In this document: piece after piece, positions 1 through 63,800 of the stretch | Layout of the letters: each line of letters starts with the position of its first letter | Numbering within the stretch: position 1 is the first letter of the stretch | Source: Takakia lepidozioides | Lineage: Eukaryota; Plantae; Bryophyta | Length of the DNA: 64,000 nucleotides | Assembly (NCBI GenBank): GCA_030704615.1 | Contig: CM060731.1 | Location: 4,898,001-4,962,000, forward strand | Direction: 5' to 3' | Translations under genes and position numbers: made by a program | The notes under the pieces: generated by a model | Database searches by the model: none | Seen by the model: the letters and a program-made list of their open reading frames with translations, nothing else | Told to the model about the DNA's origin: nothing

Positions 1-20
1 TAAAGAGAGAGAGAGAGAGA

Positions 21-3470: not shown

Positions 3471-3513
3471 AGAGAGAGAGAGAGAGAGAACTCTCTGGCT
3501 CTCTCTATCCTTC

Positions 3514-4186
3514 TCAAGGACCTGGACCTGGATCCGCAAGTCTTGACCCTGCTGGATAAATCTGACTTAGAGGCTGTAGTGTCCTCAGCCATGTCTGTTG
3601 CCATGAGATTGTCTGATGAAAATGAAGTTAGGCAGAAAACTTCCCTGAACTTGTTTCCAGTCAGTGACATGGGGGAGGACATCTTGGATGACCTCAAGGG
3701 TCTACCCACTCTCGGCACTAGACTGAAATTTAAACTCAGGGCAGGAAGCCTACCTTTGAACAGCAAACAGAAGCAGAGAGGAAAGGGAGAGTGCAATTGC
3801 CCGCTGTGTGGGCAATCTGAAGACAGTATTCACTTTCTGATACACTGTCCGGGGTTCTCTCACCAAAGAGCGCTCTCTTCAATTCTATCAAGGGAATTGT
3901 GCCTGTACCCCTGTTTAACAACTTTGAAAGTCTCGAGGCTGAGCCAAAAGCCCAGGCCCTCCTGAGGCCTAGTTTTTGGGCAAATCACACCCAGCAGATT
4001 GATGCTTGTGTGAAGGGATTTCTAGAGGATATCTGGAAAACCCGGATTAATTCTATATATGGAGGTAAGTCACACTACCAACGTCAGCCCCTGACAGAGG
4101 TAGGTTCTGTCCCTTTTGTTCCCGCTCAAACTGGGCGCGGGGTCAATGGCCACAAGGCTATGGCAAACAACGTCTTATGAGTACAA
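3514..4186 (+). mobile_element. LINE family A copy 2, 673-bp 3' fragment
   Basis: Near-identical to the 3' end of copies 1 and 3 and ends ...CTTATGAGTACAA. 10-bp TSD TCTATCCTTC at 3504-3513 and 4187-4196. Confidence 0.92.
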
Positions 4187-4862
4187 TCTATCCTTCAATA
4201 TGGCAACCATTCTCGGATTACTTAATCCTGTCGTGGTGTTGACAAATTTCTTTTTGAGCTGCTCGTACATTGCTGTTGGTAAGGCAAGGAGAATCATGCA
4301 TCCATGAAGTTCCTAGTGAACAAACAGGACATTTGATGGCGAACTAATCCATGATATCTTGTGCTAGGCCCTGTAGCAGCAGCATAATGGAGTATATGTG
4401 TACATCGCTCTCTTGGCTGGTCTCCTTACAGATAATTTCTTTCCATGTAGGTGCAAGCTCATAGTTTCTTCAAACCATTCAGAGAAAAACAGCAGTAGTA
4501 TGTGTACACAATAAACACATACAAACAGATTTGAGGTTCTAGAGAACTAAAAGCCTCACTACCTTAGTCTCTTGCCGTTAGTAGCATTTCCTGTAACAAA
4601 AGAAGGTGAAGTGGCCTCACCTGGATTCATCACAGCCCACCAACAAACCAACAGGTTAGTGATCCCTGTGGAACCCCAGGCTTAAACCACTTCACATTTG
4701 TTATCAATCTCATCCCTGTAGCAGGTCATACTAGTAGAGAGAGGAGATGTAAGGGAGGTCCTTTCAGCCATATCTGTCAACAATGGGTACTCTACTTAGC
4801 AGCACCTTTTTCAGCCCATGCTCCAGAGGGTGGGGGTGCGGGTGGGGGGTGGTCTCATGTAA

Positions 4863-5107: not shown

Positions 5108-5264
5108 GTCAACAACCTTTGTGTTGCCATAATAAGCAGCCAGTCAAAGTGCATTAGTAAGGTTGTCAGCTCCTTCAGCTCTTGCGTGCTCCTCTTCCAA
5201 ATGAGAAGAGTGGCCAGGCTTGCTAACCTAATAGGGCAGCTGCTTTAGGTTAAGACCTAGGCAG

Positions 5265-5631
5265 TGTTGGAGGTGTCAAGGCTATAGCCCTTGCATGGCA
5301 CTTTGTGAATAGAACGGGACAGGTAGCTCAGTGGTAGAGCACCCCACCGGAATGGGGGAGGTCCTAGGTTCAATCCCTGGCCCGACCACACGCCAGTGGT
5401 TTTCCAACATGGTGTCAGAGCCAAGGTTGGGGCGGTGGTCAGAATGGGTGGGCATTAGCTATAAGGGCTATGCCCCTTGAGGGGGAGTGTTGGAGGTGTC
5501 AAGGCTATAGCCCTTGCACGGCACTTTTTGAACAGAACGGGACGGGTAGCAAGTGTTAGAGCACCCCATCGGAATGGGGGAGGTCCTAGGTTCAATCCCT
5601 AGCCCGACCACACGCCAGTGGTTTTCCAACA
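5265..5631 (+). mobile_element. Complete TRIM (miniature non-autonomous LTR retrotransposon) with tRNA-derived LTRs
   Basis: LTR1 5265-5409 and LTR2 5488-5631, both TGTTGGA...TCCAACA. PBS TGGTGTCAGAGCC at 5410 (near-match to the tRNA-iMet PBS TGGTATCAGAGC). PPT GAGGGGGAG directly before LTR2. 5-bp TSD GGCAG at 5260-5264 and 5632-5636. Confidence 0.95.
5317..5388 (+). ncRNA. tRNA-like cloverleaf (Pol III A/B boxes) inside the TRIM 5' LTR; second copy at about 5540-5610; probably not a functional tRNA
   Basis: A box TAGCTCAGTGG and B box GGTTCAATCC. Acceptor stem GGAC(A/G)GG with CCCGACC, D stem GCTC/GAGC, T stem CTAGG/CCT(A/G)G. The anticodon loop is non-canonical (no U33). Confidence 0.85.
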
Positions 5632-5860
5632 GGCAGAACATAATGAGTCGTCCCCTTCTCCATTTCCCGATCTGTTCTAGGCAAAATCCTGAACAGAATA
5701 CCGGGGTCAGACAATTCTTGAATGCTGTTAAAAAGAACTTAGCCACATTCAAGGAAAGAGAGATAGATAGAGACAAAAATCCTCAAGCCTCTCATTTTCA
5801 GGTTTCTTAATTCTGACACAAGGTCTTGTAAAGAACTTAGCCAATTCAAGGAAAGAGAGA

Positions 5861-5933
5861 TTGTACTCATAAGACGTTGTTTGCCGTAGCCTTGTGGCCA
5901 TTGACCCCGCGTTCAGTTTGAGCGGGAAATTCT
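5861..5933 (-). mobile_element. ~68-bp family A 3'-end mini-insertion
   Basis: Reverse complement of TTCCCGCTCAAACTG...TTATGAGTACAA. 19-bp TSD CAATTCAAGGAAAGAGAGA at 5842-5860 and 5934-5952. Five extra nt at the 5' junction. Confidence 0.92.
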
Positions 5934-6118
5934 CAATTCAAGGAAAGAGAGAGAGATTATTCATGGGAGCATGGTTACTAGTCATCCACCCTGAATGAAG
6001 TTTGAATGGAGCAGAGTTAGATGCTCATTCACACACATCTTTGATGTTGTATACTGCTAGCTCGTAGGCTTAATTGTTCTTTTCTTTCATAGTTCTGAGA
6101 AATGGTGGTGGATGGCAG

Positions 6119-9100
6119 TGAGCTGGTCTATGAGGTGCTGGACTCGCTGTGCCAACGTTTCCAGGAGTTGGATGTTGCCACCATATTGACTATCTTACAA
6201 TGTGAGAACTCACCATTGTCCATACTTGAAAAATACATTGCATTTGGACTTCATGTAGGAGGAGACATCTTCGTGTCCATGTACAATCTCTGCTGTGCTG
6301 GTTAATGCTTTTGGGTACTGAATGAGTTAGTTGTTCCATTCTCTCATTCTCCAAGCATCTTTGCAATAGACTTTTGAAATGCAGGTGAACACTACATATC
6401 TCTCTGTGTGAACCCTTCACTCTCACGATTTACATCTGTGTCATGAAAGTCTACAGTCCAATCTGTGATGATGACGCAGAATTTGGTCTGCAGCGTGTGG
6501 GATGGGGTTGAGAGCTGACGACCCTTCATCTATGAAAGAGTTTGTTGTCGCCGTTCAGCAGCGTACTGTTGAGTTGAAGGCGTCTCTCCTCCACAATAGC
6601 GAAGAAACTTCCAGTACTATTGGCAAAAGGGTGGGTTCTGTGCAGATCTCTCTTGTGTAGGTTTTTCTTTCCATGAAGTACTACTGGTAGAGGTCTTAAG
6701 AACTGGCTGGAGAGAGGAAAAAGAGGATCTCTTGCACCCTTGAGAAATTGAAAGACCTGGTGACCGTAGGGACTCAATGGCTGATTTGTGGAGAGGGAAA
6801 GATTGTACTCATAAGACGTTGTTTGCCGTAGCCTTGTGGCCATTGACCCCGCGCCCAGTTTGAGCGGGAATGTGGAGAGGGAAAGAGAGAGAGAGAGAGA
6901 GAGGCCACTCTGCCCTAGTTGAACTTGGTGTGTTTTGGTGGTTGCTGACTGTGTCTGGATCTGCATTTCTTCACTTGCCAGTGCATGGCTGAGGTTTTGG
7001 CTTATGAAGGGTATAGATTTTGTGGTGTATTCCCTCCAACCCACCCCCCTTTCAGAAAGACAAAAAATCCACTCATGGACCATTCCTGCAAACATTGACT
7101 CTGCATAAGGTTGATTCCTGCCCTGCTGCTCGATCCCTCTAGCTGGAAGTACATGACAAAGTGTTTTGGTTGCACTGCAAGCCTCCCTGGTCCAGGAAGA
7201 GTTCAACAATAAAGAGAGACTGTAATTCATGACACTTGGTGTTCCTACACGCAAGTACTAAAGAAGGGTACTTTGAGCAGGTACAATTCATGCTTGATAT
7301 GATCTGTGACATTAAGAACAACAAACGGCGATCTAAGGATGAGCCAACACCTCACTTCCGGCTGAAAAAATGGCTCTTAAAGGTGAGTACTTCCAAGGAC
7401 CAGTGTTTTGGTTCAGTTGTTTCCGTTTCTTGAGATTCAGATCCTGTTTCAACAGATGGGGTCACTTGGAAGGGCAGGGGTGAGATGCAATGTGTGAACT
7501 GGAGAGGGAAGTCCCCCCCATCCATGCTCTGTCTCCCTCTCTCTGAGTTTGAGGACCCAAAGTGATATTTCCTGAAATGGTTGCTTTTGTCGTTCTCCTT
7601 TGTTGATTGGGTCTTTGGGCCTCCCTTTGTCTTACTCTCTCATTCTCTCTCCCCCTCTCTCCCTCCTCTCTCTGCTCAAGGGCAAAGTTCATGGTGCAGC
7701 TCAGGGTGGGAGACGTGCAGCTACGAGCAGTCACATGGGTAAGGCTGCTGGACCCCATGAAGAAAGGCCAGTGGTGGCTGCCAGGGACACCAAGTGGCCA
7801 TGCCCAGGAATGCCATGCCAGCGATATAAGGGCTGAGGTTGCAGGGGCCATGGATGCTGGGGCCATGGAAGCTGAGAAAATGCTTCAGCTGGCAGCATCC
7901 CAGAGAATGAACACGGATGCCCGTCGCTCAGTTTTCTGCATTGTCATGAGTGGAGAGGACTACATTGATGCTTTCGAGAAGATTTTGAGACTGAAACTAC
8001 CTGGGAAACAGGTTCTCTCTCTCTCTCTCACTCTCCCTGAGACGACACAAGCTACCTAGACGACAAACAATTCACACGCAAAGGGCTGGCTTGCGGCTGG
8101 CCACTTTCAACTTCTCAGGGTTGACCAACCAAAGGAAACAACTTGAAGTGGGACAAGTTCTTCGGACTAATGATATTCATATCTGTGCTGGGCAAGAAAC
8201 ATGGGAAACGTCGGATAAACTGGTTGGAGATGTCATTGGTTATAAATGGGCAGGTAAGATGTGTACTCTCAAGGCAGCCTCTGCCAAACGCGGTCAAAAA
8301 GGGGTCGGATTCTTTGTCCGTGATTTCTTGTTTGATAATTGCGAAATTATCAACAAGGGTTTGAGGTACGAGCATAGTATCTGGCCAAAACTGAATTTGA
8401 AGGGCGGCATGAGTACAAAGGACCTCTTTGTTGGTTGTGTTTACATGCCCACAGAGGGGACCCTTAGTGCTGACGCAGACAAGGCCTTCGAAGATGTAAA
8501 GCTGGACTGTGCTTCGTTCCTTGCCAAAGGTCAGGTGGTACTATTGGGGGACTTCAATGCCCGGGTGGGCAAAGGGATCCATCAGGACGATATCATTGGA
8601 CCTTTTGGTGAGGACGAGCTGAATTCTAATGGCAGACGGTTAATTAACTGTCTAGAAGAGCTTCAGCTTTTGACCTTGAATAACAGGACAAGTGGTGACC
8701 AAGTGCAGTGGACTCGTGAGAAATCCCAAACTGGGGAACGTTCCATTGTGGACTATATCATAATGGACAAAATTTTGTTCCCCCAGTGTGCCAATGTGTT
8801 GATCGACAGAACTGATATTGGTACCTCTGACCACTTCCTGGTTTGGACTGAGATCAAAAGGTGTTTTCCCACCACCAAGAGATCTGTGAAACGTTCGATT
8901 CGGAAGTGGCGCATAGAAAAATTCCACAATGAGGAGGTCAAGGCTGAGTACGTCCAGGCCTTGCAAGAGGCTCTCCCTCATTTTGTCCAATCGCTCCAAG
9001 AACTTCAGTCACGCTCTGTTAACGCAAGAAATGAAGTCGAAAGAGCAGTGGACTCTTGGGAGAGTTTCGTTTCCTCCGTGGCTGACAAGATCTTTGGGAG

Positions 9101-12100
9101 GAAACTAATCGTCTGCGGTAGAGCAGTTAATTGGTGGACTAATGAGATTAAACTCAACATAGCTGAGAGACGAGCCCTCTATAAAGAGTGCTGCAATTTG
9201 GCAACCAACAGAGAATTGTGGGCGAGGTACTACCAGCTCCGTAAAGATATCAATCAGCTTGCTAGGTCTCAGAAGAAATTATACTGGGACAAGTTATACA
9301 GTGAAATAAACTCAAACCACCATGGTGGTAATGACAAGAAATTCTGGTTGGCCCTTCAACGTTTGTACAAGCCGAAAAACGGTCAGCAAGTACAAGCGCT
9401 GAAGACTACTAAAGGTGCAGTGGTGACTTCATCGGTTGACATTGTCAAAACCTTTGAAACTCACTACAGTATCCTTGGCAGAACTTCTAGGTCTAACAGT
9501 GAGGGGTCTTCTGCTGAATGGAGGGACTCAGTTGGAAAAACTGATGAACTGGAGTATATTTCAATGGCGTATAATGCTCCCATTAGTTCTTCTGAGATTG
9601 TGGAAGCAATTGAACATTTAAATGGATATAAAGCTGGTGGACCTGATGGTATTGTCAACGAGCTTATCAAGCACGGTGGCGATCCCATGATAGAGGCCCT
9701 AGTTCTCCTCTTTAACCTTATCTGGAAGACTGAAATGATCCCCTTTCGCTGGCGACAGGGGGCATTGTCAATCTATACAAGAAGGGTGACAGAGAAGAAC
9801 CGGGGAACTACCGTGGCATCACGCTCCTCAATGCTGTTGGCAAGACATTCTGCAGAGTTATAAGTACTCGTCTCGAGGTTGATCTGGAGTCTAGAGGTTG
9901 TTTCCACGAAGGCCAAGCTGGCTTTCGGCGAAACAGGGGCTGTGTGGATCATATCTTCACTCTAAGCCAGATTATCCAGGGAAGGAAAAAAGAAGGGAAA
10001 CCCACTTATGTCTTTTTCCTGGATGTCAAAAAGGCTTATGACACAGTGTGGAGAGATGGCCTATGGTTCCGCCTCTGGTCTTGTGGGATCAAGGGAAAGA
10101 TGTGGAGAGTTGTCCACAACTTGTATGCTCACACCAAAAGCTGTGTCACTGTTAACGGACAGAAGTCCAACTTCTTTGACATAGACCAAGGTGTAGCTCA
10201 AGGATGTACTCTCTCCCCTCTGCTCTTCAATGTTTTCATCAATCAACTCCTCGAGGATGTGGAAAGTGATAAGTGGGTTAAGGGTGGGTGATACCACCAT
10301 ACCAGCCCTTATGTTTGCGGATGACTTCGCAGGCATAGGGGAGACTCCAACCAATCTCCAGGAGTTGATTGATTGCGCGAAGAGATACTTTGATCTTTGG
10401 GGGCTAGAGGCTAATGTCAGCAAATGTGCAGTGGTAGCATTCAACGACAGAGGAGAGGGAGGAAGTGATCTTAAGTGGCAGTGGGGTAGTCAAGAGATCC
10501 CGGTTCTCACTTCCTACACTTACCTGGGCGTTGAGTTCTCCTCCAATTGTAATTGGGATGCACATATCCGGAAAGTTGTTCAAACTGGCAAGGGCAAAGC
10601 TCTGGGGCTCACTAAATTTTTCCACTGCAGAGGGGTCAACTCTGAGGTTAAGAAAACCATGCTTTGTCGCGTTATTAGACCTGCCTTGGAGTACGGATCT
10701 GCTATATGGGTTGATAACTCCAACCAGGCTAAGTCTCTAGAATCCATTCAAGTGGGGGTGCTTAAGGAGTGTATGTCAGCATGCTCCAAAACAGCCAATG
10801 TGGCTGTTCGGGGTGAGTTTGGCATTCCGTCCTTAAGCTCCCGACGAGATGAATTCAAGGTCAGATGGTGGGGTCAGCTGCAACATATGCCCAACACCAG
10901 ATATCCTAAGTTAATCGACTCTATATCTTGGAAACAGGACCGCCCTGTCAAACAGGCTAAGTCCTGGCAGAAGAGAGTAGAAGAGATCCTCAAGGACCTG
11001 GACCTGGATCCGCAAGTCTTGACCCTGCAGGATAAATCTGACTTAGAGGCTGTAGTGTCCTCAGCCATGTCTGTTGCCATGAGATTGTCTGATGAAAATG
11101 AAGTTAGGCAGAAAACTTCCCTGAACTTGTTTCCAGTCTGTGACATGGGGGAGGTCATCTTGGATGACCTCAAGGGTCTACCCACTCTCGGCACTAGACT
11201 GAAATTTAAACTCAGGGCAGGAAGCCTACCTTCGAACAGCAAACAGAAGCAGAGAGGAAAGGGAGAGTGCAATTGCCCGTTGTGTGGGCAATCTGAAGAC
11301 AGTATTCATTTTCTGATACACTGTCCGGGGTTCTCTCACCAAAGAGACGCTCTCTTCAAATCTATTAAGGGTATTGTGCCTGTACCCCTGTTTACCAACT
11401 TTGAAAGTCTGGAGGCTGAGCCAAAAGCCCAGGCCCTCCTGAGGCCTAGTTTTTGGGCAAATCACACACAGCAGATTGATGCTTGTGTGAAGGGATTTCT
11501 AGAGGATATCTGGAAAACCCGGATTAATTCTTTATATGGAGGTAAGTCTTACTACCAACGTCAGCCCCTGACAGAGGTAGGTTCTGTCCCTTTTGTTCCC
11601 GCTCAAACTGGGCGCGGGGTCAATGGCCACAAGGCTACGGCAAACGTCTTATGAGTACAATCTCTCTCTCCCTGAACTTGTTTCCAGTCTGTGACATGGG
11701 GGAGGACATTATGGATGACCTCAAGGGTTTACCCACTCTCGGCACCAGACTGAAATTTAAACTCAGGGCGGGAAGCGTATCTTTGAACAGCAAACAGAAG
11801 CAGAGAGGAAACGGAGAGTGCAATTGCCTGTTGTGTGGGCAACCTGAAGACAATATTCATTTTCTGATTCACTGTCTGGGGTTCTCTCACCAGAGAGACA
11901 CTCTTCTCAAATCTATGAAGGGAAATGTGCCTGTATCTCTGTTTACCAACTTTGAAAGTTTATTCCAAGGTAAGTCTGACTACCGGCGTCAGCTTCTCTC
12001 AAACTTCTCACCCATGTCTTAACTGTTTCCAGTCTGTGACATGGGTTAGGACCTTAAGGATGACCTGAAGGGCCTACCTACCCTTGGCACCAGTCTGGAA

Positions 12101-14106
12101 TTTAAACTCAGGGCAGGGAGTCTATCATTGAACAATAAACAGATGCAGAGAGGAAAGGAGATTGTCAATGCCCGATGTGCGGACAGCTTGATGATAATAT
12201 CCATTTCCCGATACAATGGCTCATAGGAGAGCAGCCCTCTTCAGGATCATCAAGAACATAGTCCCTGCACCTCTGTTCACCAACTTTCCAAATCTGGAGG
12301 CGCAGCCTAAAGCAGTGAGCTTGTTGGGGTCTAACTGCTGGGCAGACCACACACAACAGATTGATGCTGATGGAAAGGGCTTTCTAGAGGAAATCTGGAA
12401 AGCCTGAACAAATTGTTTAAATCATGGTAGTGGAGGGAGCCCTCACAAATGTAGTGTCTGTTCCCTTTTGTTGTACCCAAACTGGGCACAGCAACTCGTC
12501 ACAAGGCTCATATCCCTTAGGCTCTTTGGGCCTCCTGCGGACATGATAAATTTCTAGGTTCTTTCTTGCTCTCTCTCTGTCTTGTCTGAGCTCCTTCAGC
12601 TTTCGATAAACTGTAGCATTCAACTATCAGGAAATGTTTGCTAGCCTCACCATCATCCTCACTCATCAGATGTGTGGATTCTCCTGTACTCAGCTGGGTC
12701 AAGTCACTGAAAGAGGTACAAGCCTACCTTATTTGACTGTCAGAAAGGCGCTTTGTAAAGGGTACACCAGAAGCATTGAACATTTACAATTGCACAGTCA
12801 AAGTCTGAGAAGCTCTACAGGGAGAAGAGAAGGGGAAATAAAAAATGGGGCCTATTTCTATTGAGGAGAGCTTGCTCCAGTTCTGAAACTCATTGTTATA
12901 AATGAAGTTCATTCTGGCCTTCCAGATTTTCTGGGGAAACCTCTTCACCACAGCTTCAATTTACGTCGATATTCAGCCCATAATACATATGCAAGGAGCC
13001 TGGCCAAACGTCTGAACAGTATGATGAAAGATCTTTGAATTGGATATGAATTTTCGTTGGTAAAGGACACCTCCTTCAGGAAATTTATCACACAAGATTG
13101 GAGGTGGGTTGCATGGAAGGCCAGCTTATGATTGCACCTTTCATTCTGTTTGACAGGATCGTGAGGTGGTAAGAGTTATAGTGGAGTGCTGCCTTCAGGA
13201 GCAGCTCTTCAACAAGTACTACGCTCTACTTGCCATCAAGCTGTGTCATTCCGACAAAAACCACAAGTTTTCTCTTCAGGTGCTTTCCCTAGCTGGATGT
13301 ATGGCCTTCCTCTGTCTTGCTGATTGTTGCATTTTTGGCATTTGCTGTGGATGGTTCTATCGCACAAGAATGTTTGTATGTCCACTGCGATGCCCATGGT
13401 AGGGTGAAGAGTTTAGTCATGCTTATCATCTTGGTTCCAAAATCTGGGTGCCCTATCAAGGGTAACCTGTCCGTCTGTCCACGCCCTTCCCAGCCCCTGC
13501 CCTGCCCTGCCCTGTCCTTTCTCTTCTGCTGGGGCTGCTTTTGGCTGTGGTTTTGTCTCTTCTTGTCCCATAAGCTCTTTAAGCTTTCCGTGGACTTCAT
13601 GGGAAAAGAATAGACTTGTAGCTTTTATCAGGTTTGGATTTGTTTTACTGAGTGGGTCACTGGTGGTGGTACAGTATTGTCTCTGGGATCATTTCAAACA
13701 GCTGGACTCAATGGACGTAAGGCGCAGCTCAAATCTGGCACAGCTCACGGCTTCCGTCGTTGGCTCATTTGCACTGTCTCTGGCAGTCCTGAAGGCTGTT
13801 GATTTTAGTGACCTGCGAGTGATGACATCCAAGGTTGTGCTGCATTTTCGGGTGGTTTTAGAGCACCTGTTGACTGAAAACTCAGATGACATTGTGTGGG
13901 GTGTCTTTTCCCGCATAGCAGCACCCCCAGAGCTAGCAGCCCTCAGAGATGGGCTAGCACTCTTTTTACACCAGCATGTCTTGACTGTTGATAGCAGTAA
14001 ACTGAAAGCTAAGAAGGGGGAGTCTGAAAAGGGTCAACTGCTGCCCAATAGATGCCGCCTGGCAAAGAAAGCCTTGGCAAATGTCACTGGTGTGCTTTTG
14101 AAGTGA
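6119..14106 (+). CDS. NOM1: Nucleolar MIF4G/MA3-domain protein (NOM1/SGD1-like), 3' part. Exons ~6119-6201, 6494-6630, 7281-7382, 7700-8011, 13157-13279, 13675-14106. Upstream exons not found, probably left of the window
   Basis: GT-AG, phase-consistent exons translate to ELVYEVLDSL..CGMGLRADDPSSMKEF..QFMLDMICDIKNNK..KGQWW..QRMNTDARRSVFCIVMSGEDYIDAFEKILRL..DREVVRVIVECCLQE..YCLWDHFK, which are characteristic NOM1/SGD1 motifs. The acceptor of the first exon is approximate. Confidence 0.88.
6803..6870 (-). mobile_element. 68-bp family A 3'-end mini-insertion (NOM1 intron)
   Basis: Exact LINE terminal 68 nt. 16-bp TSD TGTGGAGAGGGAAAGA at 6787-6802 and 6871-6886, next to a (GA)n tract. Confidence 0.94.
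8041..11660 (+). mobile_element. LINE family A copy 3, near-full ORF (EN-RT-CCHC) with frameshifts, in a NOM1 intron
   Basis: ORFs 8091-9863, 9944-10291 and 10230-11654 together give a complete EN (LATFN..QETW..GDFNA..SDH), RT and zinc knuckle. Lesions near 9540, 9760 and 10265 relative to copy 1. TSD CTCTCCCTGA at 8031-8040 and 11666-11675. It sits in the (TC)n tract just after the donor at 8012. Confidence 0.93.
11670..12510 (+). mobile_element. Two older, diverged family A 3' fragments stacked head-to-tail (~11670-11995 and ~12020-12510)
   Basis: Both start near AACT(T)GTTTCCAGTCTGTGACATGGG and encode degraded DDLKGLPTLGT.LKFKLRAG..C..CGQ.ED.IHF. Confidence 0.85.
13520..13600 (+). mobile_element. 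LINE family B 3'-UTR fragment
   Basis: GGCTGCTTTTGGCTGTGGTTTTG...TTGTCCCATAAGCTCTTTAAGCTTTCCGTGGAC matches the family B 3' end. Confidence 0.75.
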
Positions 14107-38207: not shown

Positions 38208-41200
38208 ATGGGAAAGCCAAACAAACGCAGCAAGTGGTTGAAGGCTGTTAAGAAGGTTTTCAGGTCACCGTCCAAGGACAAGTCTGATGACGCAGATGAA
38301 CCAGTAATGAGTTACACCACTTTCTCCTGGATGGTATCGCATAATAACTTTGATTAAAGCAAATGGTTCCTTGAACTTCCATCCTGTTTAGAGGTTGTCT
38401 ATCTGTTTTTCCACTAGTTCTTTTGGCAGTCACGAAGATTGATTGGAGGTCCTATCGAAGGAGTCAACAACTTCATATACAAGTTCCTGAAGATCTAACT
38501 GCTTGCTTAACTGCTGTGATTGATCCCCAGAAAAACTCTACCAAGGAGAGTCACCGGTCCAGCCTGGAAAGATCCTTGGCACCAAATCCAGTGCCAACAC
38601 CCCTTCCACTTCCTTCTGTACAAAATGTGGGATTTATCGGGGCTGAGCGAGAGCAAGGCAAGCAACCCTTAGCTGTAGAGAAGAATGAATGTCAGCAGGG
38701 GGACGAGGAGAAGGACAATACGGAGGAAGTTCTCCAGTGCACCAGCAGTGAACAGTCTGAAGATGAGCTGCATGAAGAGGACAGTAGTCGTGAAGAATGG
38801 GCAGCTAGCAAGATTCAGCGAACTTTTCATGGCCACTTGGTATGTGGGCACACCTTTGGCATGGGCAATCATGGTGGCAGGACGGGGTAAAGGGGGACCT
38901 TTTGTGATAGGTTAAAGGAGGGGGTGAGAGAGGTCCATGGGAAGCTGAGATTGGGAGAGCCTTGTTTCTGATAGGAGAAAAGTATGTTGGAGTTAAACGT
39001 CTCCTCTGTTTGCATCTGCTCCTGCTGTGAAGAGATATAAGCAGTTGACTAAAAAATTCAATTCTTGTGGTGTTTACCGTGTCTGGGGTCGGCGGGCACT
39101 ACGGGCTCTGAAAGGGCTGGTCAGGCTACAAGCATTGGTTCGTGGGCACACTGTTAGAAGGCAAGCTGCTGCAACCCTGCGCGCTGTGGAAGCTCTTGTC
39201 CATGTCCAGGCTTTACACCGTGGCCGTCGGGTAAGGATGTCAGAGGAGGGCCAGGCTGTACAACTTCACATCATGCAATGCCGCCAACTCAGCTCTCATT
39301 GCACCAAAGCTGCAGTATGATTTTTCTCACCATATCTGTCTCCCTACCTCGCCTTAACATGGGCCCTTGGCACCCTGTTGATGTAATGGACATTCTTTCA
39401 TTCTGTCTTTCTACATGAGGCTCTCCACTTGGGATAATCACTTAGAGAATCTCTCAGAGTGGAATTTGTAAGTTTAATGGTCGTGGTGGGTGGTTCTTGG
39501 GTGCCTGGCTATTCTGTCTTGCTTTCTATTTTCCTGATCAACTAATGTTATGGTACCACTACCTATGAGAGGACTTCAGGAAAGAATATCAGCGGGTTGC
39601 CTTTTCCTTGAGCTTCAAGTGAATGCTATGAGGTTCTTTCTTTCTGTCCTCTGATGGCACTGTGACTGGGAGTGTCATCCCAGCCTTTGAGGCAGCTATG
39701 TACCTGTGTCGGAAATCATTCTTCTACCCAGAACCCAGCAATTTCACCTTCACACTCTCGTCTAAAGCTTAAACACACTGTCCCTTCCTGCTCTTTTGAG
39801 ATGCCCCAGACAATGTGCCAGGGCTTGATCTCTGGGCTGGCTATGTGAACCAATTGATGCGATTGTTCGGTGCACTCTTGAGGAGATGTGGAAAACCAGA
39901 ATCAATACATGTAAGTTCCATTATGGGAGCAAGCCTTCTGCAATGTAGTGTCCCCCATTTCTGCTCTCGATCCCTCTCCTACACTATTCTGTTGAGACAA
40001 ATGGTCTATGGCCAGATTTCTGCAGCTAGAAAAGTCTAATGAGTCTCTTTCTTCCAGACATGACCGCAACAGACTCATTAGGAGAGAGCTTATGGAATTA
40101 CATGTCAAGAGAACTTGGAAGCTACCCAATCTCACGACAAAGCTCCACTTCTATCGAGAGACATTCTTGGTGCTCCGCGATGATAGAATCTTGAGACCAA
40201 ATTACCTTTCAGCACCCTTATCTCCTTCCCTCCTGAGGGCATTGGGGGTGTTCAGGGTGGGTTCCCACAACCTACGGATAGAGACTGGCAGATGGGAAAA
40301 CCTGCAACGGGAGGACCGCCTATGTCCAGCTTGCATAGGGCGCCGCAAGGAAATTGAAACTGAAGAACACTTCTGCCCTCTATACTACGAGATCCGTGGG
40401 AGATTCCACTGTTTATTCAGTGGAACCCAAACTCTCACTGATGTCTTCCACTATGAGGATCAAAAATGCTTGGCAGCCTACCTGCACGAGGCCTTCACCC
40501 TTAGACAATTGCTAGAACATTAATTGTGGTTCATGTTTTCTTTCATTTTGTCCCATAAGCTCTATGAGCTTTCCGCGGACGTTATAAAGCACCATTTCAT
40601 TTCATTTCATTTCATTTCCAGGCAAATTTTTATGTTCTTGAAGTGCTTTCCGTGTTTGCTGCTTTGTTGAGGGCCTCCTATGGACATTATAAATTTTTTC
40701 AACACAAGGATCAGAGATGCTTACCTAGCCGCTTATTTACACAAGGCATCTCCACATTATGAAATCGCTCAAAGTTGAATTCTAATCTGATGGGTGTGGT
40801 GGCTGGTTGTTGGGGGCCCCACTTTTCTGTCCTGTTTACTCTTTTCCTTTGTACTGAAAGTCTTTGTAGACAGTGTAAAGTTCTTTTCTTCTTTCTTTCT
40901 GCGGACGTTATAAAGTACCATTTCATTTCCTTTCATTTCTTCTTCCTCAGGTCTTATCCTCCTGCTTCTTGGATCTAACTGCATGTGCTGGGAGACTTGT
41001 TGGATGTCGTAATTGATGGTACTAAGACCAGGATACAGTAATCAATAGGCTCTAGTGTAAAACCTTTTCAACTTGGAAATCTACGTGATGGTTATGTATG
41101 TTAGTGTTTAAGTTGGTTGCATTTAAAAAGGTTTTGTTGGGGGTGGACGTGTCTTGTCTTTCACAGGAAGGTAGCTTGGATGCAAACAAGGGGACAGCAC

Positions 41201-44749: not shown

Positions 44750-45436
44750 TTGAAGTGGAACTTTATAACGGCCGCAGAAAGCTCAAAGAGCTATGGGACA
44801 AAACAAAAGCAAGAAACAAAAAATATAATAGAAGACTGTGAAGCCAGAAGCAGCCCAAAAGCAACTACTGCTCAAGGGATCGCCTAAAGGGCCAAAGCTT
44901 CGTGCAGTTAATCTGCTTCTGATCCTCATAATGGAAGACTTCTGTGAGAAATGAAATGAAATGAAATGGTGCTTTATAACGTCCGCGGGTTGTCACCGAA
45001 GTGACAGTGGAATCTCCAATGGATCTGATAGTGAAGAGGGTAGTAAGAGAAGTGTTCTTCAGTTTCAAGAAAGGAGGCAAAGACAGAAAAATATTCTTAT
45101 GATCATCAGAGAGGAAACAACACTCTCATTCATAGACACGAGAGAATGTACTCATAAGCCGACGTTTGCCGTAGCCTTTTGACCCCGTGCCCAGTTTGAG
45201 CGGAACAGACACGAGAGAGAGCGAGAGAGAGAACGAAATGAAATGAAATGGTGCTTTATAATGTCCGCAGAAAGCTCATACAGCTTATGGGACAAAATGG
45301 AAGAAAGCATGAGAGAGGAACAAATCCAGAACCCAAGAATAAGAACTAATGTTCTAGCGATTGTCTAAGGGCGAAGGCCTCATGCAGGTAGGCTGCAGAG
45401 AGAGAAATGAAAAGAAATGGAATGGTGCTTTATACG
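44750..45436 (-). mobile_element. Cluster of four family B 3' fragments (~44750-44948, 44948-44987, 45232-45396, 45405-45436)
   Basis: Repeated (GAAAT)n-GGTGCTTTATAACGTCCGC.GAAAGCTC..GAGCTTATGGGACAAAA. Confidence 0.85.
45146..45206 (-). mobile_element. Older family A 3'-end mini-insertion with an internal deletion
   Basis: 12-bp TSD AGACACGAGAGA at 45134-45145 and 45207-45218. 5' end reads G-TTCC(C)GCTCAAACTGG. Confidence 0.85.
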
Positions 45437-46665: not shown

Positions 46666-49600
46666 TCAAACCCCAGTCTCTGTGAACAAATCCAATAGCT
46701 CCAGTGTCTGCATGCATAGAGATAAGTCAACAACGGCAGTACATCACTTCCAGAAATAAGGATGAATAAACATGCCGTAAAAAGGGAGAGCACAGATAGC
46801 AGTGAAACCAGTAAGGAGAAAAGTGAGATCACAGGAGAGGGAAAGAGAGAGGGAGAGGACCTCTGGAACAGAAAGCTGAAGGCGGAATTTTGGGCCATCA
46901 TAGTGGTGCAGCACAGGCCTGAAAGCATCCTCTTCCAGTGGCTTGCACTGTTGACGGATACGGATTCGTACCTGGAGATTGCCACAAAGAGAACCAGCCA
47001 GACGTGTTGGCTTCATTAGCAACTTCATGCCAGAGAGGAAGGTCAACAGTGGCCTGCATGCCCGCTAACTAGAAGTAACTGCAGTGCCTTTGATAGAGGT
47101 TGGCATACAGACACAAGCACATACCAATACCTTGTTTAAGTGGATGATTTAGTCTTGAAGAAAGACCCTTCAGCAGACAAGATCTCTCTCAAAGCCCTTC
47201 TGCACATCACCTCAACAGTACAATGAAACCATAAATTAAAGAAGAACACCCAGGTCAAAATATAACACCGACCTGAGCTGGGAATCTAGATTCACCACGA
47301 CATTTTTTGTCTTCCCAAGCTGTCGGATCTATATTAGAACCACCAAAACTCGAAGCCTGCAACCACAATACATGGTAGACCAGTGAATTCCTAATAGATG
47401 TGCATGGAGATTAGAAAGCTGGGAAAAAAGAACACCAAGGCACTACATCTAATACATGCCCCAGTTGAATCACATGCTCATATTTGTCTCCTCATCCCTT
47501 TGCCTGTACTGAAGGAAATGTCAACATCATACCGGATATGGTGTCCTCACTATTGAAAAAAGAACATTTGGAGCACAAACCCTGCCATCTCCATAACATA
47601 CTGGATTCACTTTTCGGACAAGAACAGTATATGCTAGACCTGTGATATTGCCAGCAGGTGCTTAAGGACTTGACAGGTTTAAGTAGTAGTCCGGCGGTCA
47701 TTGGTAAATCATTTCCAGGATTGCTTGGGGACAAAGTTTGTGGCATGGCAGCTGCCAAAATCACACCCAAGCACCCCGTTTCTTGGATCAGGCTAAACTG
47801 GAAGAAAATAAAGTAACAATGCACCATCCTGACATCAAGGATGACAGATATAGAATGCACCAAACCTGAGAGTCCCAACCCTGATGTAGGCAGCAACAGG
47901 AGGAAATATGCAAGTGCCCACCCCATGGGAAATGATCAGTCTGTCCCGAACCACAGAACACAGAACAAGATTCACAAGGGAGATTGATTGAAGCTTCAAC
48001 TCCAGCATACCTCAAAAATCCCATGAAGCTGGTGGGTGGTGTAGTTGTACAGAAAGAGAGGAAGGCCAGGTTGGATTGCACGGACTGAATCCCTGTATCT
48101 CTGTGGTAACCCTGCAATTGTTAGCAGCAATGTCTTTGTCAGAATCCATGTTCAGTTCAACCAAAAAAAGGATCTGCTACAGTTGTGTCATACTGAGAAC
48201 AAAGAATGGTATGTAGCTGCAGCCTCAGTTTCAGCACACATGCTGTGATGCTGTTCTGCAGAGGTAAAACTAGCTAACCGGACTTTCCATACCTACACCT
48301 CTCTCCCCTATTACATTTAATCAGGAAAATGATCTGAATTACAACTCCATCAATACATGCAAATGCTAACAAGCTTGGTCAGATACTAGAAACAGATCAT
48401 AAATTTGACCACTTCCTCCCATCAAACAAAATCTTCAGCTAAAACAACAACATCATCAAGTGCATGCTTATAAAAGACCGGAGAACAATTGCCCATTATG
48501 AAAAGAAATAAGTTTGACGTGATTCTGCAAACACAATTGGAAATGTAACGAGTACAAAATCTTCAACACAATTGACGTTGAATTCGACTGCGCATGGCTT
48601 TTCCTCCATCCACTTTTTCCACAGCTACATGAAGCTTACACGCTGTCTTCTCTCTTCTCTGTCCAGACGAGACTTACACGTGCACTCTATTCGTAAACTT
48701 TCCCGCTCAAACTGGGCGCGGGGTCAATGGCCACAAGGCTACGGCAAACAACGTCTTATGAGTACAATCTATTCGTAAACTGTACGCTCTCCAAATAAGG
48801 CATATCAAGTATATGAACCTGACTCACCAAAAAGTTGTCGCTTGAGATCTTCCTGCATGGTGTCATTGTTGCAAACAAATATGTAGCCTCCCAGCGTCTC
48901 ATGTCGCGGGAGCATCTCTGTGGGGGGAAGTGACTTGAATCGCTTGTCGTGACTGCTGGTGATCTGGAACGGGGTGTTTCCATTGAACACCCCAGTCATT
49001 GAGGCTGTGGTCGCCTTTTGCTCCCCGGAAGATTGTTTGCGCTCTCCGACTGATTGTTTTGAAGCCCGTCGGCCCTCTCCCACTGCTCTCTTGAACTCGC
49101 CCCCAGCCGCTTGCTTTGTGTCTCCCAGCTGGGTGAGTTGCCTGTCCAAAATCCCTGGCTGCCTAGTAGCGGCAGCAAGGGTGGTAGTCCAGTTCTGGTC
49201 CCCCGTTCCTTCTCCCGAACCCCCAGTTCCTTCCCCAAAAAGCCAGATCTGATATGGACGCGCCAGCGGTGCTGAGTTGAAGGACCTACGAGAGAAAAAG
49301 GTGCGAGAGGTGAGGTGCGCGACGCCTGAAACTTGCTGAAAAGAACCAGAACCTTGGTGAAAGAAACTAGGAAACACCAGCTACGATGATGGATAGTAGT
49401 GATCCGAGCCACGAGCCCTGACAAAGCTGAGTGCTCCCAGGCTTCAGCTGCTATTATATTCATTTAAAACTTCATGTAGTCCTTGATTGAGCCGTGCATC
49501 AGTTTCCCAAAGAGAAACCTGCCCTTTCTATCCAAGTAACGTCCTGTCGAAACATCGTCGAGAGCATTATCAGGGAAAATATGTCTCCAAGATAGTGCTT

Positions 49601-56481: not shown

Positions 56482-57775
56482 TTCTTGTCCCATAAACTCT
56501 TCGAGCTTTCCGAGGACGTTATGAAGCACCATTTCATTTCATTTCTAAATCAGAGGGGGCATGCACTGTTCTCAAATTGCTGCGCATGCTAATTTCTGTA
56601 CCCTGGTTTCATGTGGATCCCATCTAACATACCTACATAAATCTGGAGAGTCCATATAATGACGAATTTTCCTCTGCTTTCAACTGTATTGTCAACATGG
56701 AACCATATTACCTTTTCTACTCCGCGGACGTTATAAAGTACCATTTCATTTCATTTCTACTCTCTTCCTCTATATATTTAGCATATGGTTCAAGCTGTTA
56801 GAGCTTCCACACCAGTGGCACGGTATATGGGTACATCAATTGCCATTTACCGAGGTATGTGCAGGGCCCGCCAGAAGATGGCGGGGCTGCAGGCGGAATG
56901 CTCCCCACCGGTGGCACGGTACCGGGCCCGCCAAACCTCCCGCTCGCCAATGTCTAACGTGTGGGATGCTCACTCATGACTGCTCGGCCAGATTAACTCC
57001 ACGTGTGTCTGACTTTGTGTAGCGTGGGAGATAGGGGGTCCGGAAGGACGCGCCAAGATACAGGGCCCGGTGGAAATTCCGTGGCCTGCATTTTAGCGTG
57101 CCCCAGTGAGGCTCCGTTTTTGTGGTTTTTCTCCCTGACAGGGTATTTTGCAGTTTCGGTGGCTGATAGCGGGCCCGGTGGGGATGCTCTAAGATGAGCA
57201 ACTACACTAAACATGTAGGTTGAGAAATCACTTTTTATTACCCCCCCATAAGGCTGCTTGCTGCTTACCTCAGCCGGAGGTATACTTTGAGTAAGCTTCC
57301 GGACCTCTTGTGGCGGAGAATCATGGTGGGGGCCAGCCTCCTCCTTTCGGACAATATGAGCTGCATAACCTTGATACAGGTCTCTGGGATTTGCATACCT
57401 GATTGAAAGACGAGGACAAGTACGAAGATCCCTCAATTAATTGAATTATTTTTGGAGGGAATTATTGATAGAGGAGTGAAGAACGGTGGGTTGGGTCCTT
57501 AGTGGACAGAATGACCTGCCGCTTTAAGACCCAAGGAGGGAGCAAAACATGCTGACACCTTAGACTCCACTACATCAGACTATGGTGATTGAAAATTGAG
57601 ATGGAAACCAGGAGTATCAAGGCATACATGATAAAATACATCTTTGTCAATGAATGGGAAACAAGCCATTGGCAATATGTTCCTGACATTTCTCATTGCC
57701 AGGGGGTGTACATAGGAGGAACCTGTGGCCAGGTTTGATCTTGCGGACGTTATAAAGTACCATTTCATTTCATTT
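56482..57775 (+). mobile_element. Three short family B 3'-end insertions (56482-56546, 56723-56756, 57743-57775)
   Basis: GCGGACGTTATAAAGTAC(CATTT)n. The 56723 copy has TSD TTTCTACTC at 56714-56722 and 56754-56762. Confidence 0.85.
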
Positions 57776-57897: not shown

Positions 57898-60800
57898 TTA
57901 GGTAGATGACCTGGGTACACCCTCAAGAGTAGCATCCTTCGTCACAATGGTTTTGGCCAGTATCCTGTCTCAACCATGGTTCAAATTGACTATAGCACTT
58001 TAAAGATGTTCAAGAAAGCAGGAAGATGCATACCTGTAAGAGTGGCCACCCTTCCTCTTTCCCTTCTCTGCTTGATTGCCATTAGCCCCCCATGGTGGTT
58101 CGTCCGGGAAATTAGCCGAATGCAAAAGCACTTCTTCAACCTGTTCTTCTTTACCCTTGGCTTTGCAATGCACTCGTATTTTGGGAGGCCTTGCACCCAG
58201 CTCCAGTGACCCAAGCTTATGCTGCTCCATGCCCTTGGTCTTGTAAGAGTACCTGAGCAACAATAATTTTGGGTTGGGTTTTGTTGAATGCATCATTCTG
58301 ACAGAGGCTGGAATCAAAGAAATCTTACTTCTCAATTATTCTGCTCTTGACCATCAGCCTGTGGGTGGTCACAATGGATTTTGTGTTCTCAGGTGCAAGT
58401 CATGTTGATCATGTTTTTCCACGAAACCAAGTCAAACTGGAAATTTCTCAAAGCCTCTTCACAGGTGCTTATGCCTCAACTTGATTTTGCAGTTCAAAAT
58501 GGTGTAGGACTAACCTAGGGGAATGATGGGAGTCAGAAGTTCGAGTTCCTGAGGTAGATGCTATCTCAGGCTCTGCCATGTAGGCTTTTCCAGACAGCCC
58601 GATGGGAAGTTCCAAACCACCACCGGACCCCACACCTTCAATCTGTGTGGACTTACACCAGATATGGTCGGGGCTGCTGGCTTTTTGACGATTGAAGAGT
58701 TGCCCAGCCTCCATCCCCACCCAATCTTTAGTAAGGTTTCGCCGAAGAACTGTTTCAACGTCGACAATGTGCTCATGTGATGCCTCTCGTAAAGCATTAG
58801 GGGAGGTTGTCTCGTAGCTGAAGAGACGGCTCTTGACATCGTTGTAGTTTGCCTGTGAACGTATTGAGACGAAGGAGATATTTTCTTGGCATCAGCAGAC
58901 ATGTGACCCGGCACCTAAAGTGCATAGTATACTAAATTGATTTGCAATGCTCTTGTACATTTTACTAGTGGCCATGTTTTGAAAATTTTGTTGATCCAGA
59001 GATGCAGAAAGATCTAGAATTCTTCTCAAAACTTCACATCCTCAAAAGACAAATATGTAATTGTCAATCCTTCTGGTACATTGGCATTCATTGTGTTACA
59101 AGAAATGAAATGAAATGAAATGGTGTTTATAACATCCGGGGAAAGTTCAAAGAGCTTATGGGACAAAATGGAAAAAAACAAGAGAGAGGAAACAAAACCA
59201 GAGCCAAAAAACAGCCCAAAAACAAGTACTGCTCAAGGGATTGTCTACGGGTGAAGGCCTCGTGCAGGTAAGAAAGAAGAAAGGAAATGAAACGGTACTT
59301 TGTAACGTCCGCGGAAAGCTCAAAGAGAGCTTATGGGACAAAATGAAAAAAAACATGAGAGAGGAAAGAAAGAGGAATGAAAGGGGTTTTTGAAAGTCCA
59401 TGAAGGAGCTTCTGTTAAAGGAAGGCTCCCATCTTAGTTCAACCTAAATCTTCCCTGTTTATTTGATCATACCAAACACTGGGTGAGAGCACACACCTTC
59501 TCCTTCTTGGAAGCTGCATGATTGTTGCTCTTTGATTTTCCCTTAAAGAGCATTGTCTGCAACTCAGGCTCCAAGCGTGAACTCACCACTGGCTTCACCT
59601 GCATGAGCTTGCACATACATTCACTCAATACTAGCTCGATATGAAGTTGCAGTGTCGCATGTTATCATGAGGAAGGCCAATGTGCTGCAAGATTTTCAAA
59701 CACTTCATAAAATTGGCAACGATATTGCTCTCTTGTTCATTACTCTGCAGCAGAATGTTCCAAAAAGAGAAGATTTGTACCCATCCCTCCCTTCAGTCCT
59801 TCCTTGTGGAAGCCCCCCCCCCCACATTTGCATGCTTACTAACCTTGGACCAGTCGAGCTTTTGTGGAGCCATCACGACGGACTTGCGTCGCAAGAATGG
59901 GCGCTTCGGCACATCAGGATGCTCAGCATACTCGAGCTCCTCCAGATCAATAGGCACGCCACCACCCCCCCGGCCCACTGGAGTTTCTTCAAGCAGTTTA
60001 CTTTGGATAGATGTCTCCACAACATGAAAGAGCTGAGTGGACTCTTGGGATGCCTTGATGGGAACTGTGCAGCCTTCCAAAACCTCAGCCAGCTCTGGTG
60101 GTGGCTGCACAACCTGGCTGCTAGCATTGTGCACACAACAAGTAAAACCTACTCAGGTGAACAAATGCATAACTAGGCTTCACTTGACACCTCCTACATG
60201 ATATACGAAGTTACAACGAACACATGACTTCTAATGTCTACCCAGTGTGCCCACAATGAAGGTTTGTAATATGAATGCAGGGATATCATTAATAGGGGGA
60301 TTGCTTAAACCACCTCCTCTTTTGTTAGTAAAAGGAAAGCTAAGAGAATTGATTTTTCAAGAAGTCGCATCTTTAAGGTTTAGATGTTTTGAGCTTCCAT
60401 GTGTGAAGCCATACTTGTTGGAGGGGTTGGCTTTTCCGTCCTTTGCTTGCTCCAGCTTCGGACCCAGGGCCTGGGCTCTCTGCTGATGCTCACCATGGGA
60501 CCCCAGAAGTTCGTTTGCAGGCTGTGACTGGTGAGGAGATTGAGAGAAGTACCAATGGAATTTTCCGATGTCCCCAATGGAGTTAGAGTACTGGTCTGAG
60601 CCTCCATTGAGCACATTGCCTTCAGAAAGCTTCTTCAGTGAAGTCATCAACGTTAGGGGTTGCGGGTTCATTTTCTCAACTGACGAAATCGCAGAGAGCT
60701 TCATGAGCCGTTGGTCACCCGACCCTTGAATTGCCCTGCCCAAGGTATTTGGTGAAGTAGACCTGAATTACAGAGAAGCTTTAGAACTCTTTCTGTAAGA

Positions 60801-63800
60801 AAAACCAGTCGTTGAGAATAATTTGTTGGTGTTTGGTAGTCTATTAAGTACTGAGGCCAATAATTCGGAAGAAGTTTTTGGAGTCAGTATTGCTCCACAT
60901 GTGCAGTGCGTCTATTTCAAGTCATTTGTTAGTTAACAACATGCTAGGAAAATTCAGGTATTACTTGATGTCGTGTCACCTGGATGTGCAGATACTGAGT
61001 GGCGATGCTGGGCACCTTCTTAATACACATGAGGCCTCTGTCTCTGACCCTGTATGCATGCCCATATTTGAAAGTGTAAGAATCAAAATAGAAGTATGAA
61101 GAAGGAAAGATGGAACAGCATTTTGTTTCACTGAGATTAGGATCAACAAGATGGTTTGCCAATCTCCTCAGACATTGTTGTGGCTTGTTTAGGCCACTAA
61201 GATGACTTTCTGTTCGGGGAAAAGGGAAGCAGCACATGAGATCTTGTTCCCTCTTTCTGAGGGATAAGAGTATTACATTGGTATGCAAATCCCTTTCAGA
61301 ACATTGTTTCAGTCCCTTAGGCCCTCCCGTGGATGTGATAAATACTCTTCTTCATCCCCTTTCTCACCTGAAGGGAAAAAGAGGAAGGAACCCATTTCAA
61401 CTTCTGGTATTCTCAGGGTAAGTGCAGGGCCATGATGTACCATTCAGGGCGGTATACAGCTGCCAAACTTTCCGCCGTAGCTGCTTACAGAGTTGCGGAA
61501 GCAAGAATTGAGATGATTCCTCAACTGCTTTCTGTGACATCTGCATTAACAGTGCTCGAATTTCCTGGCCAACCATTTTGCAGGAGCTTTGAGTTTAAAA
61601 TACATCACGGTCGGAAAATGATGTATTTCCTCACTAACGTGTCTGAAGAAGATGATGAAATGAAATGAAATGAAGAGAAACCAAAGAGCTTGTCAAAAGA
61701 CCCAAATGGCGGCCAGATGTGAGCTGCTACACACTCCAGGTCCTCATAAAGAAATGAAATGGTACTTTATGACGTCCGCGGTAAGCTCAAAGAGCTTATG
61801 GGAGACAAAATGAAATGAAATGAAATGGTACTTTATGAGGTCCTCGGAGCTCAAAGAGCTTATGGGACAAAATGGAAAAAAACAAGAGAAAAAAGGAAAC
61901 AAAACCAGAGCCAAAAAACAGCCCAAAAGCAACTACTGCTCAAGGGATTGTCTAAGGGTCAAGGCCTTGTGCAGGTAAGCTGCCAAGCATTTCTGCTCCT
62001 CATAGTGGAAGACTTCAGTGAAGAAACGAAATGAAATGGTACTTTATAACGTCCAGTGAAGAGAAAGCATGAAAAGAGACAGGGGCCCTCCACAAGCAGC
62101 CCAACCACTATTGTTCAAAGGAATTGTCTACGAGTCTTGAACGCCTCATGCAGCATTTCTGATCCTCATAATGCAAACGTCTGTGAAAGACTGGGTACAG
62201 GAATAGACAATAGAATCTCCCAGAAGATAGTACTGACCCCTATCTCTTAATAGAGAGGTTAGTGACTCAGACAGAACGATAGACCATCTTCTTATATTCA
62301 TTGTCCAGAGGTTGGGAAGAATAATAAGTAGCTTGAAAAGCCATAGAAAAAAGAGACCTTAATCTCCAGGATGATGGTTTGGAATATCCGGGACTTGAGA
62401 TGGCGCCGTACCCGTGACCCCTTTGTGGCGGCCTGAATCTGCTCCACTGCCCTTACAAACCTCTCTGCCATCCAATGGAGCACTTCAAAATGCAGATCTT
62501 CCAAGGGCTTCTTTTCAGCTCTGTTCATGTAGGAGCTTAAATGAATACGGGTATTTCAACTTTCCAGAACCCAATAGTTGAAGTACATCTTGGGTCTTGC
62601 TTGGACAGTAGCTCGAGATATAACTATTTGTATTGTACCCCAAGATGTCATTTTGATCCTTGAACAATTTCTTGGGAATAGTGTAGACAGGATTGTATGT
62701 TGCATTTTGCAGTGGACCCTGGGGCCTCATAGGTCTGTCCAAGCATGTTTGCAACCGTTTCCCTCTCCCATGAAACAGAGGTTGCTTGGATATCACAACT
62801 TTTATACATCTTTAAAGTCCAGTGAGCAGAAACGAAACGAAACGAAATGGAACTATATAATGTCCGCTGAAAGCTCAAAGAGCTTATGGGACAAAAGGGA
62901 AGCAAGAAACAAGAAAAAATAAAAGACAAAGAGCGAAGCCAGAAGCAGCCCAAAAGAAATTACTGCTCAAGGGATTGTCTAAGGGTCAAAGCTTCATGCT
63001 GAAAAGCTGCTAAGCATTTCTGATCGTCATAATGGAAGACTTCAGTGAGAGATTGGGTTATGGCAGCTCTTTCGAAAAAAATCAACCCTATAAGCTTTAC
63101 GCTGTTTCCACCACAATCACCTGGCACTTGAGGGATGTATGCTGCTCACCAAAAGATGGTGCTATAAGGCCTTTGGCCAGGTGCCTCCACTTCACCATGC
63201 TGTAGAATTCCTGCATATGCCCTTCAATCGGCCTCAGCCTTGAGTGCAAGACTTAGTCTGCTCTCTTTATGTTCTGCAATGAGGTTGCTCTACGAGATAG
63301 TTGTCGAAGAGAAATGAAATGAAATGGTGCTTTATAACGTCCGCAGAAAGCTCATAGAGCTTATGGGACAAAATGGAAAGAAAAACATGAGAGAAAGATA
63401 TGTCACTTGCCTAGCATGAAGCACTCTCTACGACGGTTTACCATGCATACTCTTCTGGAAAAGACAGACTTAATGAATCAATGGTTTTGATGCCCAAATG
63501 AAATGAAATAGTACTTAATAACATCCGCGGAAAGACAGTTTCCATAGAATTGCAACAGTAGTTGAAGTCCTGGCCTTGGTCCTATTTTACTTCAGTGCAT
63601 GTGGTGAAAGACAGAAAAATCGAAAACTTCTCTACAACTTGCCTGGAAACAAGGAATGGAAGCAATAGATACACACCTTCACATCTTTTGGAAGGTCCTT
63701 CACCAGAGAAAGCTGTTTCTGAGCTTTTTGCCTCCTCATGAGCGCCCGCCATGCGCGCTGAATCACACTGGCCGCCTTCTGCATTAACGAATACCAGCGC

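Follow-up and report, generated by a model that had tools for sequence, protein, structure and literature searches.

Truncation points at the 5' end of LINE copies are normally spread out. The window analysed here, a 64-kb stretch of DNA, contains insertions that consist of nothing but the extreme 3' end of one LINE family, designated LINE-A, and these share a 5' start. The locus therefore raises the question of what fixes the upstream limit of such short copies, and whether the position of the break can be explained by a property of the parent element.

The window was searched by BLAST with the 68-mer and with an nhmmer profile of tails, and the two approaches agree on seven copies of the LINE-A 3' end, three on long copies and four tail-only (units 1-4; Table 1). 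The initial annotation had described four tail-only insertions of ~68 nt, each flanked by its own distinct target site duplication (TSD) and all beginning within 1 nt of one another. Together with direct reading of the junctions, the searches bear this out, with the adjustments that the unit includes the final T and so measures 69 nt instead of 68 nt, and that the TSDs measure 12-18 bp. Units 1-3 start exactly at TTCCCGCTC, and unit 4 starts 1 nt further upstream because the G that precedes this position in the LINE was apparently kept. Since the TSDs and flanking sequences are unlike among the four units, the insertions are independent and did not arise by duplication. This confirms that the four tail-only units are separate TPRT events with a shared, non-random 5' end. 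If the truncation points of short copies are assumed to spread across ~130 positions, the chance that three further starts fall within +/-1 nt of the first is ~1e-5 by our own arithmetic. The divergence and internal deletion of unit 4 mark it as older than the other units, and as it has the same start, the boundary has lasted over time.

The junctions themselves are informative. Three of the unit 5' junctions are without microhomology, and unit 3 carries a 5-nt filler at its 5' junction (5929-5933), reading AGAAT in the sense of the element. At the 3' side, all seven LINE-A junctions (7/7) are followed by CT or TCT, often within (CT)n. An exact scan of metagenome contigs with the last 20 nt of the tail gave no match, and the evidence on the units comes from this single window of 64 kb, in which there are seven tails, four of them tail-only units.

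Table 1. Coordinates of LINE-A copies, tail-only units, RNA elements and short copies of other families (window positions unless a locus is named).
Feature	Position	Strand	Remarks
LINE-A long copy	20-3470	-	5'-truncated within endonuclease domain; tail 20-88
LINE-A 677-bp copy	3511-4187	+	5'-truncated; tail 4119-4187
LINE-A long copy	8240-11661	+	tail 11596-11661, in-frame 3-nt deletion
Unit 1, tail-only, 69 nt	48700-48768	+	100% identical to long-copy tail 20-88
TSD of unit 1, CTATTCGTAAACT, 13 bp	5' copy 48687-48699; 3' copy 48769-48781		read directly
Unit 2, tail-only, 69 nt	6802-6870	-	100% identical to long-copy tail 20-88
TSD of unit 2, 15 bp	6787-6801 and 6871-6885		read directly
Unit 3, tail-only, 69 nt	5860-5928	-	97% identical to LINE-A tail
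TSD of unit 3, 18 bp	5842-5859 and 5934-5951		read directly
Unit 4, tail-only	45146-45206	-	83% identical; 7-nt deletion in H2
TSD of unit 4, 12 bp	45134-45145 and 45207-45218		read directly
Hairpin H1, CGCUCA / AAC / UGGGCG	48704-48718	+	in unit 1; unit starts 4 nt upstream of H1
Hairpin H2, two-part, GUC..UGGCC ACAA GGCUA.GGC	48723-48745	+	in unit 1, within GGYCRATGG core
TGA of LINE ORF in unit 1	48759-48761	+	unit positions 60-62
Second retroposon family, tails (n=12), first six	40577-40598, 40903-40924, 44963-44984, 45245-45266, 56514-56535, 56726-56747		
Second retroposon family, tails (n=12), last six	57745-57766, 59289-59310, 61756-61777, 61822-61843, 62033-62054, 63321-63342		
Short tail-only copy	L003 1807-1911		Ectocarpus sp., CACKRE030000925.1; ~100 nt, (C)nGGAG TSD
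Short tail-only copy	L020 2718-2805		brown alga; directly after C-run of another LINE

The parent, LINE-A, is an APE-type non-LTR retrotransposon (LINE). The ORFs of both long copies carry Exo_endo_phos/Exo_endo_phos_2 and RVT_1 Pfam domains, and in the copy at 8240-11661 the endonuclease ORF begins upstream, at ~8100. The variable TSDs on the units, 5' truncation, the lack of LTRs and one common 3' end place the family in the same group, and copies sharing that 3' end come in sizes of ~3.4 kb, 677 bp and 69 nt. LINE-A has no poly(A) and inserts before CT. In the copy at 20-3470, the RT ORF (27-2312, minus strand) runs through the tail to a TGA located 7 nt before the end of the element, and both the reading frame and the TGA are preserved in the other two long copies, despite the 3-nt deletion in one of them. 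The tail thus comprises the last 19 codons plus the stop, which lies within the unit, and is not an untranslated region.

Relatives of the LINE-A RT were gathered by a word search with its protein sequence, and the corresponding DNA was then fetched (Ectocarpus, ENA/JGI contigs). In the protein word search the closest relative has 52% identity, with no match above this value, and hundreds of relatives lie at 27-45% identity, many of them from Ectocarpus. One relative with 40% identity aligns up to the extreme C-terminus (...VNG..ATA). RTE-X, a candidate assignment for LINE-A, is the most abundant LINE clade in Ectocarpus (PMC12477816), which would fit the many Ectocarpus matches.

The window shows further features of the LINE-A group. 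The copies at 20-3470 (minus) and 3511-4187 (plus) are inverted relative to each other, with their tails facing outward, and are separated by 40 bp across a (GA)n tract; the resulting 680-bp inverted repeat of the LINE-A 3' region could form double-stranded RNA if transcribed through. Behind the copy that ends at 11661, two LINE-A-related fragments (11669-11995 and 12020-12508) are stacked on its tail. One of them shows 92% identity, carries an internal deletion and lacks the module; the other, at ~73% identity, comes from an older subfamily. Their starts lie ~545-552 nt from the 3' end and differ by no more than ~7 nt, a position that may represent a second preferred site of truncation. An old, diverged fragment at 39822-40044 (plus), related to roughly the final 220 nt of LINE-A, terminates in ...AATGAGT ahead of a CT-rich tract, and thus more than one lineage of the LINE-A group was once active here.

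Comparison with the relatives accounts for the position at which the units begin. Their tails share an ordered 3' module consisting of a hairpin (H1), CGN, the nearly invariant sequence GGYCRATGG, which opens a two-part hairpin (H2), TGAGTA and a simple-repeat tail (or C-run), and the TGAGTA stretch often contains the stop codon. The module was found in relatives with 27-52% protein identity. The 69-nt unit is composed of 4 nt, H1, CGG, the GGUCAAUGG core with H2 and a 23-nt end containing the ORF stop, and its extent agrees to within 4 nt with the conserved 3' module of the relatives. As delimited by these tails, the unit is the whole conserved module and almost nothing more.

The two hairpins described in the initial annotation, CGCTCA/TGGGCG and TGGCC/GGCTA, exist, and their pairing is preserved by compensatory changes. 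For H1 we relied on an alignment-free count, preferred because H1 is partly out of register in the covariance-model alignment (65% paired). In 10 of 13 tails, as against 3% of random windows, a hairpin of 6 bp or more ends at one and the same base, directly before CG-N; with the threshold lowered to at least 5 bp at the same base, the count is 12 of 13 against 7% of random windows in the same loci. The stems vary in sequence (CGCUCA/UGGGCG, CGUCUC/GAGAUG, CGUCCU/AGGACG, CCAGG/CCUGG and others). In H2 the lower stem is 3 bp long (GUC/GGC, GCC/GGC, ACC/GGU, GUC/GAC), and the upper stem, of 4-7 bp, shows numerous changes on both sides; pairing in the H2 helices reaches 84-100% in the covariance-model alignment, and compensatory changes occur. 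Overall, covariation scores 0.27, compared with 0.17 for shuffled data (0/500 reach 0.27) and 0.03-0.10 with slid partners, and the covariance model built from the tails recovers additional tails outside its seed. Support for the hairpins comes from covariation and not from thermodynamics, because neither the 68-mer (z = -1.0) nor the last 150 nt (z = -0.4) folds with unusual stability relative to shuffles.

The last ~20 codons of the RT overlap these 3' RNA hairpins, both in LINE-A (27-88, minus strand) and in three further loci (L001 12700-12790; L002 3006-3066; L003 12955-13022). Because of this overlap, the conserved C-terminal peptide (..VNG..ATA..) probably reflects constraint on the RNA rather than on the protein.

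Several familiar ways of generating a fixed 5' end were considered. No known ribozyme (HDV-like, hammerhead, twister, pistol or hatchet) gave an Rfam match to E = 10 across 3900-4300 on either strand, and an Rfam E-value scan of the tail plus 200 nt upstream returned only one chance-level lncRNA match. An HDV-like fold was also rejected by hand, as the candidate P1 strands are only 11 nt apart and leave no space for P2 and P3. ARAGORN finds no tRNA-like shape, and hence no RNase P/Z substrate of this kind, at or upstream of the units, and no Pol III A or B box is seen in the unit by eye. The earlier statement that the unit is no classical SINE therefore stands: by ARAGORN, Rfam and eye there is no Pol III head derived from tRNA, 7SL or 5S. 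One property of SINEs is present, namely a tail in common with a partner LINE (LINE-A, 97-100% identity). A splice acceptor at the break was rejected, there being no AG ahead of TTCCCG; a GTAAGT that would make a good donor is present ~49 nt before the break. For a TATA-driven start, the TATA-like run is situated 65 nt upstream and the G|T at the break violates the pyrimidine-purine start rule. The break is not a ribosome-protected decay end either, since it falls 59 nt before the stop codon and not at the expected 16-17 or 46-47 nt. A literature word search on fixed LINE truncation points yielded nothing useful.

A second retroposon family in the window offers a comparison. It ends in ...GGACGTTATAAAGCACC(ATTTC)n, with 12 tails in the window. 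Five copies retain no more than 17-25 nt ahead of the repeat, and their starts fall 1-6 nt below the hairpin AAGCTCTTTGAGCTT; two more start near -57. The short-copy starts of this family are ragged (-17 to -25), in contrast to the base-exact LINE-A units. Some of its copies are stacked behind one another's tails. Elsewhere in the window, a ~150-bp direct repeat (5260-5409 and 5483-5631, 93% identical), unrelated to the LINE-A tail, contains a tRNA-like cassette that ARAGORN reports at 5317-5389 as a tRNA of undetermined type.

Scans of all 83 loci of the relatives revealed two short tail-only copies, both in brown-alga DNA (Table 1); the locus L001 contains no further copy of its own LINE's tail. 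The two brown-alga copies start 24-36 nt above H1, away from the module edge. As these starts differ, the exact boundary belongs to this plant family and not to the whole clade.

The units are thus retrocopies that depend on the LINE and contain nothing but the recognition module, with their 5' end at the module edge. That the module serves as the recognition element of the RT, and that a discrete RNA stub exists, is what we infer from this arrangement. Since the break falls at the 5' boundary of the conserved module, its position is explained, but not the manner in which the break is made. In the reading that we tentatively favour, LINE-A RNA would lose its 5' part, by cutting or trimming, as far as the folded module to which the RT is bound, leaving a stub of ~69 nt that would still be a competent template. 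The RT would prime at a nicked, CT-rich target and run off the defined 5' end of the stub, and the cDNA would then be joined without microhomology and, once, with 5 untemplated bases. Such run-off is favoured because the ends are base-exact, three junctions lack microhomology and one carries 5 untemplated bases. An analogy may also speak for it, as RTE-X LINEs of Ectocarpus are described as mobilising a non-autonomous element whose similarity to them is confined to the 3' end (PMC12477816). We regard TPRT by LINE-A that copies only the 3' module, from a pre-cut or trimmed RNA stub, as falling just short of probable. The preference for it is slight, and release of the RT at the module edge is nearly as likely. 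The units look like the smallest copies that the LINE-A copying enzyme can make.

Release of the RT would mean that reverse transcription starts on a long LINE RNA and undergoes a programmed or abortive stop, with the RT or RNP dropping off at the upstream edge of the module, perhaps assisted by a hairpin 7 nt further up. That 7-bp hairpin (GACAGAG/TTCTGTC), pointed out in the initial annotation, is real (4093-4111) and does end 7 nt before the break, with H1 following 4 nt after it. The second LINE family in the window likewise gives many very short copies, which start close below a hairpin, and no additional RNA-processing activity would be required. As the cause of a stop, however, the upstream hairpin does not stand up well: its stability (-8.0 kcal/mol) does not exceed that of H2 (-8.1), a hairpin that the RT crossed in 7/7 copies, and a plain structural stall is therefore insufficient. 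Nor is the hairpin visibly conserved in the diverged subfamily. Moreover, stalling is usually ragged, as it is in the second family, whereas the ends of the LINE-A units are exact. Release at the boundary would yield the same DNA as run-off from a stub; a stop on long RNA is a possibility that we consider rather unlikely. Alternatively, the units could be self-renewing, promoter-less mini-retroposons, with units in host transcripts acting as sources so that minis breed minis, and with the module restoring its own 5' end through an exonuclease block or a directed cut. The minis do outnumber long copies in the window (four versus three), and the 5 extra 5' bases of unit 3 could be a piece of a parent's flank. 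Yet two units match the tail of a resident long LINE at every position, no mini-specific substitution is found among the four units, and no parent with an AGAAT flank is present in the window. The old unit 4 seems to retain the LINE's own upstream G, which points to a LINE template. We consider this reading improbable, and it is equally doubtful that the module regenerates its 5' end from any transcript containing it, by stopping a 5'-3' exonuclease or by a precise cut. Were that the case, a promoter-less RNA of 69 nt would act as a minimal retroposon, able to renew itself and to spread out of host introns.

Two further readings carry much less weight. A non-autonomous element that has escaped notice, either a SINE or one resembling RTEX-N, might use the LINE-A tail, and the units would then be its 5'-truncated copies. 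Such partners of RTE-X LINEs do exist in Ectocarpus (PMC12477816), but no foreign head is joined to a LINE-A tail within the window, and the same fixed truncation point would still be required, so that nothing extra is explained; we consider this very unlikely. Coincidence, or segmental duplication of one insertion, is scarcely credible. The small sample is in favour of coincidence, but a shared start has a chance of only ~1e-5 under a broad distribution of truncation points, and duplication of a single insertion is refuted by four distinct TSDs in unlike flanks.

What is new here is that the LINE-A ORF continues through the tail and that the break lies at the edge of a module conserved in distant relatives. 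If the pattern holds genome-wide, the minimal RNA template accepted by the LINE-A RT would be delimited to the base: a 69-nt module which overlaps the end of the coding sequence and whose two hairpins covary across a land plant, brown algae and other protists. To our knowledge, template recognition by poly(A)-less LINEs is understood for a few animal elements only, and the module would be a defined substrate with which this step could be studied biochemically and structurally. The units also raise the question of whether LINE RNAs are processed into discrete 3' stubs that are still mobile. Genome annotation would otherwise fail to recognise many 69-nt insertions in CT-rich introns as products of retrotransposition.

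Among known systems, the nearest in kind are ordinary 5'-truncated ('dead on arrival') LINE copies, which like the units consist of a LINE 3' end, have variable TSDs and follow the target preference of the parent. They differ in that their truncation points are spread, whereas 4/4 units here begin at one base, the module edge, to within 1 nt. Kajikawa and Okada reportedly described, in 2002, the eel pair UnaSINE1/UnaL2, in which a SINE has a 3' tail in common with a 'stringent' LINE. In SINEs of this type the RT of the partner LINE recognises a ~60-nt 3' stem-loop tail, and the dependence of the units on LINE-A can be likened to it; unlike these SINEs, however, the units have no Pol III head, body or promoter and are the tail alone. 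The closest published precedent known to us is Maque of Anopheles gambiae, which Tu is said to have described in 2001 as an interspersed retroposon of ~60 bp with TSDs and a LINE-like 3' end. Like the units it is extremely short, is flanked by TSDs and ends as a LINE does, but it belongs to an insect and to another LINE clade than LINE-A. As in Maque-like elements, the units are ~60-70 bp long, have TSDs and the 3' end of a resident LINE, and occur as several independent copies. The Maque reference (Tu 2001, Gene 263:247, PMID 11223264) is listed in PMC3212995, and the element is named among SINEs in PMC2278371. Finally, RTEX-N1_Ec32 of Ectocarpus is non-autonomous and shares only its 3' end with RTE-X LINEs (PMC12477816). 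It resembles the units in lacking a recognised Pol III head and in having a LINE 3' end; its length, however, is ~600 bp and it includes a 5' part whose origin is unknown, whereas the units are the bare module.
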